Shown here piece by piece: positions 2,357 through 13,139 of a DNA stretch of 64,000 bases (the stretch's first letter is position 1; every line of letters begins with the position of its first letter). Both the position numbers and the translations under genes were made by a program. Under the pieces are notes generated by a model. That model saw only the letters and a list, made by a program, of their open reading frames with translations, ran no database searches and was not told the origin of the DNA. Source of the stretch: Ylistrum balloti (taxonomy: Eukaryota); contig NW_026781981.1 in NCBI RefSeq assembly GCF_031769215.1, positions 930,001 to 994,000 on the forward strand, written 5' to 3'.

Positions 2357-2858
2357 TACCCCTGTAACCTTACGATTCTGGGTGAGGGGAAAGCTGTATG
2401 TTTTCCACCCATGTCATTGATACAGGTTTCTATAGTAGCCCTGTAACCTTACGGTTCTGGTTGAAGGGAAAGCTGTATTATTCCACTCCTGTCATTGATA
2501 CAAGTTTCTATAGTAGCCCTGTAACATCCAGGATCTGGTTGAGGGGAAAGCTGTATGTTTTCCATCCATGTCATTGATACAGGTTTCTATAGTAACCATG
2601 TAACATCCAGGATCTGATTGAGGGGAAAGCTGTATTATTCCACTCCTGTCATTTATACAGGTTTCTTTAGTAGCTCTGTAACATCCAGGATCTGGTTGAG
2701 AGGAAAGCGGTATTATTCCACTCCTGTCATTGATACAGGTTTCTATAGTAGCCTTGTTACCTTAAGGTTCTGGTTGAGGGGGAAAACTCTATTATTCCTT
2801 GTCTGTCCTTGATACAGGTTTCTATAGTAGCCCTGTAATCTCAAGGTTCTGATTGAGG
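2357..2858. repeat. 78-79 bp tandem array, about 6.5 copies, overlapping the stop codon and 3' UTR of the G-alpha gene
   Basis: Recurrent CTATAGTAGCCCTGTAAC...GGTTGAGGGGAAAGCTGTAT...GTCATTGATACAGGTTT; equivalent positions at about 2361, 2440, 2518, 2597, 2675, 2753, 2832. Confidence 0.95.
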
Positions 2859-3006
2859 AGGATAGCCATGGTCGAGTTGAAGATTCGATCAAAATTTTCT
2901 GTGTCTATGGCTTTGGTAAGGTGACAGTACACGTCATCCGTTCGACGGCCTGCCGTGATAAACTGATTGCAGATATATTGGGACGAATCGCTGAAAGAAT
3001 TGTCAC
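2822..3006 (-). CDS. G-alpha exon 8 ([60 protein letters not shown])
   Basis: 185 nt to TAG at 2824-2822; CTTTCTGCAG acceptor; G5-like TKAID. Confidence 0.92.
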
Positions 3007-6000
3007 CTGCAGAAAGAAAAAATCGAAATTAGTTTCAAAATCACCAATTTGTGCACTCAGAACTATTTGTATTTAAATGTACGCTATTTATTAATTATTT
3101 ATTTTTAGAACACCTTTTCCAACCTTAAACTGCTGATATATAAAGTATCAACCGATTATTTATAGCAGCCTTTTGATTAGGGTATTGTCCATATGTGTTT
3201 AGTATTTTATGTAGCTTTCATTAAACGTATTATAAAGAAGAACAAAATTCAAGATTTACCAGATATTTGCTCATCAAAGGACGAGACATATAAATAACAC
3301 AATGGAAATTTTCGTGTGAAACACCATGTTATGTTTCGCCTTGTTTCATGTGTATACTATTTACCTTTATATTCTGGAAAGCAGCACTGGAGAGTTTTCC
3401 TTTTTATTAGGATTTGGAACACATCTATTTTATTTAAGAAAAGAACAAACGCTGATTTCGAAAGATATTTGTTTCTACATAAGGACCTAAACAGCGCTAA
3501 CGACTGGAGAAGTTTGCTCTGAAAGAAAAAAACAAATTTTCATAGAGTGCATTGAAATCATGCATAAAGTTTAGTGTTTTGATAAAGAATATAGATGAAT
3601 GAAAAACACGTATGGACATATTATTGATTTCAACACCAATCAAAGCTGAGGATTCTTTATATGTTCTATATCGAAATGAAAGTCTGATAACATGATAACT
3701 TGTTTATATTAAATAAAAATCTAACGCTTAGATATTGACCTATTTACAAACTAATCTACCACACAGACATATGCAAAAAAACTTGTCAAGGGGAAAAGGT
3801 CTCCAAATGTGTTTTGTATGTAATTTTAGTATGTGGAACAGAAACATGTTTCAAAATGTTTTCTTATTATGAAGTTCGGCAGTTACCTTTCTAGTTAAGT
3901 CGTCTATCTGAAAGTAGAAATTCATGGCTGTCACAAATATAACGGCTGTGACGTTGTCAAAACAATGAATCCACTTCCTTCGTTCTGACGTCTGTCCTCC
4001 AACATCTACCATACTGCAAAAATGTTGACGTTTGTATGAATGCTAAGCTAATGTTGATGTGAATAACATATAAAGGTGGTATCTGATATTATTATTTGAA
4101 AAATAACTTGTGAAGGTGAAATTGGTGTTTGATCTTGTCATGTGAATAACAAGTGGTGATGAATGGTGGTGTCTGAACTTATGTGAATAACACGTGAAGG
4201 TGAAGATGGTGCATGATCTTATTATGTGAATAACACGTAAATGTGGTGTCTGACATTATTTTGTGAATATCATGTGAAGGTGGTAGCGGATCGAACAACT
4301 CCATCCACTAACCATGCCTAGTTGAATGGATCCGTTAACTTTATATGGTTAACGCGATCCGCTAACATCCGCTCATCATGTTTAGTTGAATGGATCCGTT
4401 AACCATACATGTTTAACTCGATCAACTAACCATGCCTAGTTAAATGGATCCGCTAACCATGTACGATCAATTCAATTTGCTAACAACTTTTTGTACGAAA
4501 TCATTTCAATTTCTGACAAAGAGAAAAGGGTCATGGTAAAGATGCAATCAGTATTTACCATAAAATTTTTCCTTTGAAGTCAAAGTTGAGTTCTGTGACA
4601 CCTGAAGTAGTAACCCGAGCGCAGAGGATATCCTGGTCAGTTGGGACGTAATCAGGGGAAGCTATCCGGTCAAACGACCTGAAAAGGCTACAATATTTTG
4701 AAATTTTCAAAGTATCAGCAAAGTATTGTCTTAAATCGTTATCTTGATGTGTATATACGAATAAGTAACACGCCCATTATTTAAGAAACAAAAAACATAT
4801 ACTGATAAATAATGGTAATACATTGGTGGTTATTTTATGTTTTGAAGGTCTAACTCACTACTGCGCTCCATCTCCAAGACAATATTCCTGGCCCCTTTTC
4901 ATGCAGGCTTGAAATCCTCCTGAGTTGTATAAACATTTCAACTCCAACCGGAAATCCAGTATGTTTTGGAATGCATTGGCGTTCGTTAGATACTTATCTG
5001 CATATTCCTGCAATTCAGTTAATGTATTTAATGTATAAAGCATTGTTTGGTTAGTAATAAGTAGCAAATTCATCATCGTCATGTTTCTTAATTGCTTAGA
5101 AATAATTGACATTGTACTGTTAATATATAAGCGTATAATTATTATATATAAAATTGTTTTGTAAATGGCTTATGCGCTGTCAGGAAACTGAATCTAATGA
5201 CCTATATTCTTTGCCGTTTCAATGCAAATAACAAATAAACTCTTTTGACATATTTCTGATAATTTGATAATCAACTATCCAAGTTTTGTCTATCTAAATT
5301 ATGTTTATTGCTACTCTTTATCACATAGATATTAACATTCAACAATTGTATAGCACATTTATGCTTTCATTTATGAATGTCAATGAATACTTATTTAACA
5401 TGCAGACAACAATAAGTGAGTTTTAACTTTGTTCTTGTATTTGGCTTGGATTTAATACTTCAGACACAAAGGAGTCATTTTTCTAGACAGTGATAGTACA
5501 ACTATGGAAACCGAACGCAGCGCACAGGTATTCAATTGTGAGTTTTTGGTTATTTTGAATAACGATGGCCTCAGTGCCAGGAGAACAGAACTACGATTTC
5601 CCCTAATTTATAACTATTAGTACATTTAAATATCCTTGCCTATAACTAATTGTCTTCGTTTCTAATACAATATTACGTATCAACAGAAACCAAAACCAAG
5701 CAATGCAAGTGATCAGCTTACAAAACAACGAAATATAAGGTAATCACACGAGAAGAAATAACTGGCTTTCATATACAGTGCTGCAGATAAGTGACCGAAA
5801 CGATAAAATGACAATCTCGTCTATTATTGAACTTTGCTTTTTTAACATTACATTGTATCTGGCGTGACAGTAAAAAATGAGTTCAGAACTCATCGGTAAT
5901 TGTCTGATAATACCAAACTATAACCTGTCATGACTTTGTGTTATATGTGGTATCATCTATTACAACTAAGCTATAGTCTATGATTTTTTTCTCAAGTAGT

Positions 6001-8162
6001 TTTGTCTCATAATAACCCTCTTGCTTTGTGTAATATGTGATGTCTTCTGATAATGTAAGGCTATAACCCGTTCTTGTTTTGTGGCACATGTGGTGTCGTC
6101 TGATAATGCAAAGTTATAACCCGTTCCTGCTTTGTGTTATATATGATTTGGTCTGATAATGCAAAGCTATAATCCGTTCTTGCTTTGTGTTATATATGAT
6201 TTGGTCTGATAATGCAAAGCTATAACCCGTTCTTGCTTTGTGTTATATATGATTTGGTCTGATAATGCAAAGCTATAACCCGTTCTTGCTTTGTGTTATA
6301 GATAATATCGTATGATAATGCATAGCTATAACCCGTTCTTGCTTTGTGATATACATGATATGGTCTGATAATGCAAAGCTATAACCCGTTCTTGCTTTGT
6401 GTTATATATGATATGGTCTGATAATGCAAAGCTATAACCCGTTCTTGTTTTGTGTTATATGTGTTACATGGTGTTGGCGCTTTACCTTTGTTGTCTGGTC
6501 GTCAAATGCGATATTGAGCACAGCCATATTCTGCAGAATGATTTCAGTGTATTGAAGGAGATTCTCTATTATTACTGCCTTGAAATCCATTCGTTCTGAC
6601 AGACAAAAACCATCTTTGTGCAAAATCCTACAACATAAAATCGACAACAGCTAGCAAGAAGTGATGAGGTCCGACTGAACTGAAAAAGCATTTTTTATTC
6701 ATTTTGAATTGTCATATCAATGTTTTATGATAATGTTTTGACACTAGTTTTTTCACAGTTTAATTGCTAATGAAAGATTAAGCGTATAAGGGGAACAAGG
6801 CCCAATGGATGTATTGAGTTTATAATGCGCCTGTCTAACTGGTACAATGAGTCTTGTCAGTTACAACTGTTGCTCTGTCCTCCAGTAGACAAAACAACAA
6901 TACAGATTATATACAATGACATTGATGCTATGTAATGGTCATCCAAACTCTTTATTATTCGTATTGTATTTGATTAATGATATATTTGTTTGTGAGGATG
7001 ATGCTTACAAAATTAATCTTAAAACATTGCAAATATGAATTATGACCAGTGTAGACACTTCAAATGTGCATACATAAGAACAATTTAGCCATCATGATCA
7101 ACTGATTGTCGTTAGTCTCACTCAATAACGTCAATATAGAGAACGTTCCTTTCAAAAAATATTTCTTTCTTTGTAAGACGAAGAAGAAGGAGAAGATGAA
7201 GAGGAAGAAGTAGAAGAAAATTAAATCATTAGTAATATTTTCTTGACTGACTATAGAAATCATGGATATGAAGATTTTCATTGATATACTAAATACGTAG
7301 GAGATTCTACAGTAATTGATATGGTTAAGAATAAACTTCAGCTGATGCTCCATGTTGTGACAATTATTACGTACCTCATTTGCTTAAAAAGTGTAGTTTT
7401 TCCAGACCCGGAATCACCTGTAAAGATCAGTTGTATGTAGACATTGATGTATTGTTGTACATGTATTTGTGAAACAATCCTCAATTACACGGGTACGTGT
7501 TTTCATTCATTCAGCCGCCATGTAAATCTTGGTCAATCCAAGTAAGTAATATCTCGTTCTCAATGAGAACAAGGTGAATGACAACGGAACAAACAAGCAA
7601 ACTAACCATCATCAAAGACGTCCAGCTTCATAATTCACAAAGAAAAAGATTATTTCTCAATTGAATCACTGTGACGATCTAAAATCCTCTCGACTATTTT
7701 CATCAACCTGCATCTTCTTAAACATTGTGTTACTAGTTTGACAGTATGTGGAATGTTGATTTGAACAGACTTCTGATGTAAAATATTTCAGATGTTCATA
7801 TCATCCACTACTAATTAATTCTTAATAAAATGCTATACGTCCTTGTATGATTATTTATTTGGATACACAATCCATCTGATCAATGCAAGACTGTTGAATA
7901 TTTTATACATTAATATAATGTAGAAGAGAGTTCTTAATATCATTTACATTTTCGTTTCATGTTCGATTGCTGTTCATTAAAAACACATTAATATTATCAA
8001 TTGTTCCCATCATTTTTAATTTTCACATCGATTGATTTACTTACCTAACAGCAAAAATTTTAACTTTTTAATTTTTCGTTCTTTTGCGATACTGATGTCT
8101 ATTTGTCTAGAATGTTCTTGTTGAACTGTGAGCAGAATATTCCGACTTCCTCCACAACCCAT
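2822..8162 (-). CDS. Heterotrimeric G-protein alpha subunit, divergent, Gi/o-like gene structure (348 aa, 8 coding exons)
   Basis: Exons (minus): 8162-8045, 7417-7375, 6627-6486, 5007-4859, 4687-4559, 4013-3887, 3518-3365, 3006-2822 (118/43/142/149/129/127/154/185 nt = 1047 nt). All introns are GT-AG with compatible phases. Protein: [11 protein letters not shown]...[29 protein letters not shown]...[12 protein letters not shown]...[27 protein letters not shown]...LFLNKIDVF...[13 protein letters not shown]...[11 protein letters not shown]1-G5 boxes and the MGCxxS lipidation motif are present. Confidence 0.95.
3365..3518 (-). CDS. G-alpha exon 7 ([52 protein letters not shown])
   Basis: 154 nt; TTCTTTCAG acceptor; AAAG|GTAA donor; NKxD motif. 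Confidence 0.95.
3887..4013 (-). CDS. G-alpha exon 6 ([42 protein letters not shown]; switch II/III)
   Basis: 127 nt; TTTTTGCAG acceptor; AAG|GTAACT donor; DVGGQ motif. Confidence 0.95.
4040..4470. repeat. Degenerate intronic repeats in G-alpha intron 5: TGTGAATAAC-containing units (about 4040-4285) and 54-64 bp units with GGATCCGTTAAC palindromes (about 4290-4470)
   Basis: TGTGAATAACA..GTGAAGGTG recurs; AGTT(G/A)AATGGATCCG occurs at about 4320, 4384 and 4438. Confidence 0.75.
4559..4687 (-). CDS. G-alpha exon 5 ([43 protein letters not shown]; switch I)
   Basis: 129 nt; ATTGTAG acceptor; TG|GTAAAT donor; RxxT motif. Confidence 0.93.
4859..5007 (-). CDS. G-alpha exon 4 ([50 protein letters not shown])
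   Basis: 149 nt; TTGCAG acceptor; TA|GTGAGT donor. The stop shown in the ORF track is an artefact of reading into the intron. Confidence 0.9.
6010..6460. repeat. 53-bp minisatellite, about 8 copies, in G-alpha intron 3
   Basis: GATAATGCAAAGCTATAACCCGTTCTTGCTTTGTGTTATATATGATTTGGTCT at 6102, 6155, 6208, 6261, 6314, 6367, 6420. Confidence 0.95.
6486..6627 (-). CDS. G-alpha exon 3 ([47 protein letters not shown])
   Basis: 142 nt; TGTTGTAG acceptor; AAG|GTAAAG donor; matches the start of the helical domain. Confidence 0.92.
7375..7417 (-). CDS. G-alpha exon 2 (P-loop [15 protein letters not shown])
   Basis: 43 nt; TTTACAG|GT acceptor; AG|GTACGT donor. Confidence 0.93.
8045..8162 (-). CDS. G-alpha coding exon 1 ([40 protein letters not shown])
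   Basis: ATG at 8162; 118 nt; donor TTAG|GTAAGT. The exon extends 5' as UTR to an acceptor at 8236 (TTTTAG|GAAG). Confidence 0.92.
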
Positions 8163-11113: not shown

Positions 11114-13139
11114 TTACTCATTGTCACTGTCAGACTCAGACCAGTCCTCAATCATCATTGCGTCATCAGCACAGCTGAGGTAGCTTGATGAGGCAGTTGG
11201 GTGTGCTATCCTAGGCTGGTGTCGCTCATAAGAAAGGTACCAGAGAACAGATGCAATATGGGCACAGCAGCCCACTACCCTGGCACCAACCTTACACTGG
11301 CAATACCAACCAGATATAGGAGTCAAACCAGGGGAATACTCAATCCACAGGTTGTACAGTTTCGAAGCAACATGTCTGGAACGAATCTGAACTTTAATTA
11401 AGCCAGGCTTTTCCCTGCATGCCATTAATTCATACTGGCCATCTTCAGACAAGTGCTCCATGGTATATGACTTTGCCTGCTTCAACTGATATACTCCCAT
11501 GGTAAGATCTCTCAACTCCGGTTCTGTCAGCTGAGGAAAGTCAGGCAAACTGGCCTCATCAAGCTTGACCCATATGGCTCTTTTCCTAGCCAAACCTTCT
11601 TTTTCAACTTGAATTTGCAATTTATTGGGACATTTTGACAGAGCCAACATTCGCTCAGCAATGATGAGGTCATTGGGTTAATCAGAGGCAAGTGGGGGGC
11701 GAAAAGCATTACAAATTGCACACACAATTCTCACAAAATCACCTACAACTGGAATGAGAGTGTTGGGCAAAACATGTCCCAAGGTCTTCCACTGCTTAAT
11801 CCGCCCATTTGCCGACTCCACAACCCACCTTACCTTTGTTACAAGACGAGATTCGTTTGCCTCAGTATGTGTGTGTTGTTTCTGCCCCTTTGGCAAGAAA
11901 AATGGCATTTCTGTTTTGATGCCAGCATCATTCAACAGTTCTGTCACATCTCTGAAGCCTCTGTCAACGACAAGAACATCATCATCTTGAAACCAATCCT
12001 TGATGTTCTCAGTGTTAGTTTTCAACATGTGTTTTGTAATGTTGGCGTCCTTATTTCGACCGTCTACTAAATATGGGCCTAGGACAGACAGTATATAGCC
12101 ATCTGAGGCCACAAGAAGCATTGGTTTCAGGAGAGGGCGTCCTTTGTGCATCGAAAAAGAGCGTCGTTGGAAAGTATAGTTGCTGGACTTTTCAACATAA
12201 ATATATGTGCCATCAGCAACAGCTATAGCGACATCTTCACCAGAGGCAAACATCTTCCTTGCAAATACCGTTGTATGGTTTTGAATTACTTGTTCTCTAG
12301 TGATGTGTTGCAGGCCAAGGTGTGAAGGAACGAAGTGGGTCATCAATGCTTGGCGAGCTGAATGAATACATTTTCCACATATTCTCTTTGTCATGTTGAA
12401 CAGAGAAGCTAATATTGATAAAGACATGCCAGTCCTCAACTTTACAAGCAGGATGGCTAATGCAGTCCTTGTGCTTCTGTTCAGTGTAGAGTAAAGAGAG
12501 GGATTAACTGATCGTAAAAGGTCAGAAAATTGATTTTTATACAGACCTGTGAGACGGTAGTAATCTTGATCAGTTAATCCATCTGAGGAATCAAAGTCTA
12601 AACAACTTTTCTTTGAAGCAGCTGCCCTAAGTGTCAAAAGGATCTCTGATATTTCAGAAGAATCCAGTTCAGTGTCTTTGCTGGAATATGCGAGTGAAGA
12701 TAGACTATCAGATGGGAAATCACCATTCACTATGTGGGAAGAACAACATCTGCAGGTGTTTGGGACAAGGATACCTGTCTTAATAAAAATCTTTACTCGC
12801 ATTTCTGTTGAGAGCATTACCATTTTACTTTTACATTCCTCTCTTAACATTTTACAAATGAAACATCGAGATTCACCTAATGTAGCCCGTGGAATGTCAA
12901 GTTTGATTTTTTTTGTTTTCAGGTGACTCAAGCTGGTGCTCTACATCGCTACTAGGATGTTCAGTAGATGAATGGTGATTGTAGTATCTTCCCCTGCATT
13001 TTTTACATACGGGGTCACCAAACCTTAAGGCATCATTAATATTTGCTTACAAGTAAGACAGAATGTCTGTTTTATTCAGACAACAGAGCCTTACTTTATA
13101 TTGTGCTTTACAACAAGCGCACTGCCTGTGCACTGGCAT
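11114..13139 (-). pseudogene. Disrupted transposase, about 674 aa: N-terminal Cys clusters, HTH, DDE_Tnp_4-type catalytic domain, C-terminal SWIM zinc finger
   Basis: ATG at 13139 (MPVHRQCACCK...CKKCRGRYY). In-frame TAA at 13049-13047; +1 slip in an A8 run near 12907-12914 (ENKK-IKLDIP); in-frame TAA at 11680-11678 (PPLASD*PNDLIIAERMLAL) joins ORFs 11678-12931 and 11114-11650. Catalytic ADGTY / VVDRGF / WVVESANGRIK; SWIM YCQCKVGARVVGCCAH. Confidence 0.9.

Follow-up and report, generated by a model that had tools for sequence, protein, structure and literature searches.

The window examined here is a stretch of 64,000 nucleotides from the scallop Ylistrum balloti (assembly GCF_031769215.1, contig NW_026781981.1, positions 930,001 to 994,000), and the gene that concerns us lies on its minus strand at 8162..2822 (coordinates are those of the window unless another contig is named). 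It is an intact, single-copy gene for a G-protein alpha subunit (G-alpha) of 348 amino acids (aa), and the evidence makes it likely that this is the Y. balloti member of a strongly diverged lineage, met with so far in scallops alone, that probably derives from the Gi/o class. G-alpha proteins are among the most conserved signalling proteins of animals, and the residues changed in this one are residues whose mutation in human GNAO1, GNAI and GNAS leads to disease or to a locked switch.

An intact gene and its scallop orthologues

The gene comprises eight exons and seven introns, with a 1047-nt coding sequence that contains no internal stop codon; all seven introns are bounded by GT..AG, all 14 splice sites being canonical, and their phases are 1,2,0,2,2,0,1. 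Residue numbers given below for substitutions follow an alignment to a 354-aa Gi protein, whose numbering we take to be equal to that of G-alpha-i1. Exon 1 (8162-8045, 118 nt; all exons are on the minus strand) carries the start codon, the lipidation motif MGCGGS, the N-terminal helix and the first base of the Gly40 codon, corresponds to residues 1-39 of the RefSeq protein XP_060064237.1 and ends at the donor GTAAGT. The P-loop GDSGSGKT and the start of helix 1 are encoded by exon 2 (7417-7375, 43 nt), which is flanked by introns of phase 1 and phase 2, and linker 1 and the start of the helical domain by exon 3 (6627-6486, 142 nt; positions 43-88 of Pfam profile PF00503). Exon 4 (5007-4859, 149 nt) continues the helical domain with three codons fewer than the 158-nt exon of Gi, while exon 5 (4687-4559, 129 nt) completes it and adds linker 2 and switch I with Arg175 (equivalent to R178) and Thr178 (T181). 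Exon 6 (4013-3887, 127 nt against 130 in Gi) supplies the DVGGQ motif and Thr202 (R205T), the switch II sequence KWIHCF and a switch III that is one residue shorter, exon 7 (3518-3365, 154 nt) helix 3 with Gln241 (E245Q) and the G4 motif NKID, and exon 8 (3006-2822, 185 nt including the TAG stop) the G5 motif TKAIDT, helix 5 and the C-terminus ...NLEITGLL.

The first-pass annotation, made from the letters of the window alone, had described an uninterrupted spliced open reading frame (ORF) of 348 aa with five G boxes, and this description is borne out by the splice model and by its 100% identity (348/348 residues) to XP_060064237.1, a RefSeq automatic model from Ylistrum balloti named 'G(t) subunit alpha-1-like'. 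The protein is thus already known as an automatic record, and a separate annotation pipeline, that of NCBI, therefore reached the same gene model. For database searches the model was used exon by exon, while full-length searches used the identical RefSeq record. Five of the seven exons scanned matched PF00503 in collinear order, among them exon 6 with 55.7 bits, exon 7 with 48.2 and exon 5 with 42.3, and XP_060064237.1 carries a precomputed annotation with the same family. Structure prediction, which the first-pass annotation had proposed as a check, gave a confident G-alpha fold: the AlphaFold2 model, built on a 60-sequence alignment, has a mean predicted local distance difference test score (pLDDT) of 85.8 and a predicted template modelling score (pTM) of 0.80, and its helices 63-159 sit between helix 1 and strand 2, an all-helical domain thus being set into a Ras-like GTPase domain. 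The top Foldseek matches of this model are Gi and Gt (transducin) chains, with target-normalised TM-scores of ~0.86-0.88.

Within the species the gene is under purifying selection. The public sequencing run found for comparison, X1, consists of DNA contigs from a second individual or a close relative and covers exons and introns at even depth; our counts draw on 40 of 147 differences from X1, which comprise every difference in exons 6-8 and their flanking introns. The exons differ at 5 of 466 sites and the introns at 33 of 935 (Fisher p=0.008), so that exon divergence is one third of intron divergence. Four of the exon differences are synonymous and one is non-synonymous (Cys281 to Tyr), giving 0.041 synonymous (pS) and 0.0027 non-synonymous (pN) differences per site and a pN/pS of ~0.07. 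Three synonymous changes and the non-synonymous one fall in exon 7, exon 8 has no differences, and Thr202, the residue that replaces R205, is preserved in X1 through a synonymous change. This constraint, together with full-length orthologues of 348 aa in Pecten and Argopecten, argues against a pseudogene.

Close relatives of the protein were found in Pectinidae alone. An exhaustive phmmer search of 1.84 billion representative sequences with exon 8 returned 21 matches, of which those at E<1e-10 came from Mizuhopecten yessoensis and Pecten maximus (whose full-length form was also found), apart from one that was spurious; Argopecten irradians followed next and the remainder were generic C-terminal fragments or low-complexity artefacts. 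Two of the matches (P0003, at E<1e-10, and P0004) were considered as relatives and rejected as low-complexity repeat proteins. With a profile built from these scallop sequences, the two full-length scallop proteins listed reached 695 and 690 bits and the best other single-domain G-alpha only ~334 bits at ~40% identity. No other G-alpha exceeds ~41% identity, a value below that of Gi with Gq or Gs, and a search of the ESM Atlas returned generic G-alpha clusters only. The three full-length scallop proteins (Ylistrum, Pecten, Argopecten) are all 348 aa long; the Mizuhopecten record is a partial model of 256 aa. Between genera the full-length proteins are 58-65% identical, as against 80% between Y. 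balloti Gi and bird Gi and 86% between Y. balloti Gi and the Gi of snail and annelid; the rate is high by the measure of G-alphas only. The earlier description of the gene as lineage-specific and fast-evolving therefore holds, the former also in that the gene is single-copy in the Y. balloti genome. The further suggestion of a possible new molluscan G-alpha subfamily stands as regards a separate lineage, while 'molluscan' is too wide, since nothing close was found outside the scallops.

The automatic database names of the four orthologues ('G(t)-like', 'G(i)-like', 'G(o)-like' and 'alpha-3-like') disagree with one another, from which we take it that no named class fits the scallop family; these conflicting names also hide the fact that the four proteins form one family. 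A limited literature search found no paper describing a scallop G-alpha family. The main study of G-alpha evolution (Lokits et al., 2018; PMC5896119) covers two protostomes only and leaves molluscs unmentioned, and a scallop eye transcriptome (PMC3726758) lists a 'Gt-protein alpha subunit' that may or may not be the product of the present gene.

Altered residues and the predicted nucleotide cycle

Alignment of the Y. balloti protein to Gi shows a P-loop of GDSGSGKT in place of GAGESGKS (A41D, G42S, E43G and S47T), R205T directly after DVGGQ, a switch III that has lost one residue and whose acidic run is replaced, E245Q, C325K (which turns the G5 motif TCA into TKA) and C351T, the cysteine at position -4 becoming Thr345. 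Retained are R178 (Arg175), T181 (Thr178), Q204 (Gln201), R208 and N269/K270/D272; the G1-G5 motifs are all present (GxxxxGKT, Thr178, DVGGQ, NKID and G5 as TKA rather than TCA), while the N-terminus MGCGGS keeps the Gly2, Cys3 and Ser6 of a myristoylation and palmitoylation motif, as read from the sequence. The alignment reproduces every substitution that the first-pass annotation had listed (A41D, G42S, E43G, R205T, the short switch III, E245Q, TKA and the -4 Thr) as well as the residues it had considered retained (R178, Q204, T181, R208 and NKxD), and adds S47T as a further P-loop change. In the 60-sequence alignment conservation is 90% or higher at E43, at R205 and at E245, and all three are changed in Y. 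balloti; of the ~340 G-alpha proteins compared, nearly all have Gly at position 42.

These unusual residues divide into two sets. Ser42 and Thr47 (P-loop GxS[E/G]SGKT), a G5 motif without Cys (TTA, TTV or TKA) and the absence of the -4 Cys are common to the four scallop proteins, and switch III is one residue shorter in the full-length ones, the partial Mizuhopecten model not allowing this to be read; G42S, S47T, the non-Cys G5, the missing -4 Cys and the short switch III thus define the family. Asp41, Gly43, Thr205, Gln245 and the Lys in G5 are found among the scallops in Y. balloti only and are species-specific. The lipidation motif MGC.GS, the Walker Lys, DxxG, KWIHCF and NKxD are invariant. 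The Argopecten irradians orthologue, while retaining full length and the other motifs, carries R178S at the Arg finger and Q204N at the catalytic Gln and is predicted to be GTPase-dead; the Pecten protein has the full set of catalytic residues. It follows that residues of the nucleotide cycle are the variable part of the scallop family, and the changes in Argopecten point to a family that can live with, or make use of, an impaired GTPase.

Position 42 is the position of Gly12 in Ras, and in structures of Gi, Gt and Gs salt bridges join E43 to R178, R205 to the acidic residues of switch III, and E245 to R208. The Y. balloti protein would attach to the membrane by its lipidated N-terminus, use the conserved KWIHCF of switch II for contact with beta-gamma and helix 5, with its terminal GLL, for contact with receptors, bind GTP and act as a membrane-bound switch coupled to receptor and beta-gamma. 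The -4 Cys that marks the Gi/o class is replaced by Thr here and by Thr or Ala in the scallop orthologues, and the protein should therefore be no substrate of pertussis toxin. Ser42 would give a slow off-switch as in Gz, an expectation that follows from its presence both in all four scallop proteins and in the slow Gz. Gly43, Thr202 and Gln241 of Y. balloti would loosen the salt bridges of the nucleotide clamp and the hold of switch II on helix 3 and switch III, and the loss of the E43, R205 and E245 pairings would destabilise the active conformation, the net kinetics not being predictable. The slow GTP hydrolysis, insensitivity to regulators of G-protein signalling (RGS) or spontaneous exchange proposed in the first-pass annotation would be predictions from residue-level analogy. 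Structures of Gi-alpha-1 have been solved with G42V and with G42R, and the latter entry bears a title according to which the mutation keeps the protein from passing to the activated state.

Gz (GNAZ) offers a parallel to these features and a model of how the scallop protein may work, sharing Ser42, a changed residue 43 (its P-loop is GTSNSGKS), the lack of the pertussis toxin Cys and an origin from Gi. It has a kcat of ~0.05 per min compared with 2-5 for Gi and Gs, about 100 times slower, and is insensitive to pertussis toxin (PMC7404074). Gz is, however, a vertebrate retrogene of GNAI (PMC5896119) that keeps R205 and TCA, whereas the gene of the window has seven introns, is restricted to scallops and encodes a protein only ~38% identical to Gi; the likeness would accordingly be convergent rather than a matter of shared descent. 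As a second, independent Gz-like case, the scallop family raises the question whether Ser42 suffices for a slow timer.

Replacements of Gly42 also recur in other lineage-restricted G-alphas, with GASESGKS, GASGSGKS and GDSGAGKS in hemichordates, GSSDSGKS in the nematode Plectus, GGSECGKT in the nematode Gnathostoma and GRPESGKS in the limpet Patella. The hemichordate sequence GDSGAGKS, from Glandiceps, is nearly identical to the GDSGSGKT of the window protein. Loss of Gly42 may be a common route once a Gi copy no longer has to fill its usual role.

Slow kinetics have to be weighed against the alternative that the protein is kinetically ordinary, its odd residues neutral or mutually compensating, and that it cycles and responds to RGS proteins as Gi/o proteins do. 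All directly catalytic residues are indeed present in Y. balloti (Arg175, Thr178, Gln201, the Walker Lys/Thr and NKxD), the surface that RGS proteins contact is kept in Gly183 and most of switch II, and the strong purifying selection fits a working switch. That the near-universal Gly42 is replaced here, that another Ser42 protein, Gz, is the slowest known G-alpha, and that three residues as conserved as E43, R205 and E245 are all changed in the same protein nevertheless make ordinary kinetics somewhat unlikely in our judgement. Two considerations tell in the opposite direction. The kinetic reading extrapolates from Gz and from single mutations placed in another sequence background, and Ser is a less drastic replacement than Val or Arg; in addition, catalytic and clamp residues vary between genera, which could point to a GTPase cycle under loosened constraint instead of one tuned to be slow.

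A bolder interpretation takes this variation at face value and regards the scallop lineage as one as distant from the named classes as these are from each other, in which the GTPase timer is dispensable and the protein signals, or sequesters beta-gamma or receptors, without normal hydrolysis, possibly in a scallop-specific sensory system. The fixation of Ser42, the R178S and Q204N changes of Argopecten and the absence of the E43, R205 and E245 clamps in Ylistrum, all in a gene that is nonetheless under purifying selection, are what suggests such a role, which we consider unlikely. Copies of gpa genes serve chemosensation in nematodes; the scallop protein would be a candidate transducer for lineage-specific scallop receptors. 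A lineage that is under selection while its clamp and catalytic sites vary between genera amounts to an experiment of nature on the parts of the GTPase cycle that a G-alpha can do without.

Descent of the scallop lineage

A Pfam scan of the 648.5-Mb assembly identified nine G-alpha loci, including the gene of the window. The exons of the paralogues were rebuilt against the profile and their class was judged by C-terminal and P-loop motifs, which assigned Gs to contig C1108, G12 to C382, Gq to C441, Gv (P-loop GAAESGK) to C823, Go to C650 and Gi to C522. Two further genes with the Gi exon pattern lie on contig C194 (L038 and L039, at 559007-563930 on the minus strand and 910977-914939 on the plus strand). 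These are 61-69% identical to Gi and Go and have the canonical P-loop GAGESGKS; they lack the -4 Cys, their C-termini being ...LKDVSL and ...LESIGL, and one of them has DVGGQRNE (S206N). Three weak Pfam matches (contigs C67, C473 and C100) were rejected as Arf/Arl-type small GTPases. In the Gq gene (L040, at 533005-533493 of C441) the last coding part is apparently in two pieces split inside G5 (...HFTCAT and ...DTENIRF), owing either to one more intron or to a choice between terminal exons.

Identity of the window protein to the other G-alphas of its own genome is 32-40%, as compared with identities of Gi to Gq, Gs and G12 of 52%, 50% and 43%, and by sequence alone it is therefore as distant as a separate class. 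Its gene structure points to a more specific origin. The exons of the Y. balloti Gi gene measure 118/43/142/158/129/130/154 nt and those of the gene of the window 118/43/142/149/129/127/154 nt, with the same phases 1,2,0,2,2,0,1, and all seven intron positions and phases coincide between the two; the sizes 118/43/142/-/129/-/154 that the first-pass annotation had given for vertebrate GNAI and GNAO genes thus match the Gi gene of the same genome. Gi, the two C194 genes and the gene of the window all have the 43-nt P-loop exon, whereas in Gq, Gv, Gs and G12 of Y. balloti the P-loop and the following helix share one exon with no intron at that place. Eight conserved coding exons have been described as the pre-GNAI pattern and seven as the pre-GNAQ pattern (Lokits et al., 2018; PMC5896119), and the difference between the two falls exactly at the intron after the P-loop exon. 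All of the 60 best solved-structure sequence matches of the window protein are Gi, Go or Gt. Because of the intron positions and phases, the MGCxxS N-terminus and these 60 of 60 matches, we regard the gene as most likely a derivative of Gi/o by gene structure, which is the best-supported, if unproven, reading.

Comparison with canonical Gi (C522) illustrates how far such a derivative would have moved. The two genes have the same eight coding exons, intron positions and phases, with four equal sizes beyond exon 1 (43, 142, 129 and 154 nt), and their products share MGCxxS, the fold, the switch II KWIHCF and DVGGQ. They differ in being only ~38% identical, in the P-loop, TKA, the -4 Thr, switch III, R205T and E245Q, and in that the window protein evolves many times faster. 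Nematode gpa genes and the hemichordate 'GIb' genes (PMC5896119) likewise derive from Gi, are restricted to their groups, diverge fast and in some cases carry changes at position 42; they are nonetheless separate lineages, with 35-38% identity to the scallop proteins.

Several observations weigh against a Gi/o origin and, more broadly, against the picture given at the outset. In trees calculated under LG+G4, with bootstraps, and under LG+C20, the three scallop proteins form a clade with 100% support on a stem of 0.9-1.4 changes per site, and this clade is placed with a Patella protein and two nematode proteins, then with hemichordate Gi-like genes, outside canonical Gi/Go. Approximately unbiased (AU) tests reject neither the union of the scallop clade with canonical Gi/Go (p=0.09) nor that with Gv (p=0.15). 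The identity of the window protein to Gi (38%) is no higher than that to Gv (40%) or Gs (40%). Finally, transcription of the gene and its seven junctions rest on gene prediction, the sole public run found being DNA. The 'Gi/o duplicate' of the first-pass annotation is thus supported by introns, MGCxxS and structure matches and not by tree topology, and the phylogeny it had proposed, while uniting the scallop proteins with full support, does not assign them to a class.

The same trees provide an argument for another alternative, according to which the scallop clade is an altered member of an older bilaterian lineage (a hemichordate Gi-like type, the Lingula/Capitella type, the holothurian 364-aa type or Gv) that was lost or overlooked elsewhere. 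Maximum likelihood trees (LG+G4 and LG+C20) group these lineages with the scallop clade with support of 82-92; the position-42 changes of hemichordates, Patella and Plectus given above are shared, several of these lineages have a G5 motif without Cys, and the AU test allows union with Gv. However, the neighbours of the scallop clade are the other longest branches in the data set, and for this reason we read the grouping as long-branch attraction. The scallop proteins are 35-40% identical to each such lineage, no closer than to Gi, and Gly to Ser is a one-base change that can recur. The Patella protein was itself considered as a gastropod relative, as it has CCFPEYKG and TTATDT in common with the scallop proteins and came out as their sister in the first tree, and was rejected as a likely case of long-branch attraction: its own best matches are canonical Gi and the scallop proteins are absent from its top 120. 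The case for Gv is met by the gene of that class on C823. Gv also lacks Gly42 (GAAESGK in a zebrafish peptide, PMC11087313, and in C823), and the G5 motif of C823 is TTATDT as in the scallop orthologues, but this gene has no intron after the P-loop exon and thus no 43-nt exon, carries additional introns close to profile positions 72 and 265, and encodes a protein that is 62% identical to a holothurian Gv-type protein and only 40% to that of the window; neither the Gv-class P-loop nor the Gv exon pattern is found in the gene of the window. We therefore hold descent from an older lineage to be improbable and retain a Gi/o origin.

That the gene is a duplicate decaying towards a pseudogene, with substitutions piling up at once-essential sites, could be argued from its terminal branch, the longest of the three scallop proteins in three of four trees (~0.43-0.45), from the species-specific changes at E43, R205, E245 and C325, from the loss of R178 and Q204 in the Argopecten orthologue and from the absence of expression support, yet a frame open over eight exons with canonical splice sites throughout, the reduced divergence of exons with its 4:1 excess of synonymous changes, the full-length orthologues in Pecten and Argopecten (that of Mizuhopecten being partial) and the invariance among scallops of the lipidation motif, Walker Lys, NKxD, DxxG and KWIHCF render this very improbable.

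Surroundings of the gene

The 3' end of the gene lies within a 78-bp tandem array of 6.4 copies (2360-2866), which takes in the last 45 nt of the coding sequence. The first unit covers the final 14 codons with the stop codon plus 33 nt of 3' flank, and corresponds to the ancestral end of the gene as judged by the C-termini of the orthologues. Downstream units would read as variant C-termini, e.g. PLNQNLKVTRLL and PLNQILDVTGLL, each followed by a stop; since these units follow the stop codon, the protein is unchanged unless alternatively spliced. A 53-bp tandem repeat of 8.5 copies occupies 6012-6460 in intron 3, and a dispersed repeat of very high copy number lies at ~7476-7654 in intron 1, where the summed depth of X1 contigs reaches ~22,000 compared with ~11 elsewhere. 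The large ORFs of the window included none recognisable as a receptor or as another signalling gene. About 3.5 kb upstream of the G-alpha gene, at 11681-12931 on the minus strand, an ORF of 417 aa contains a DDE_Tnp_4 transposase domain of the Harbinger/PIF type (E 2.6e-17).

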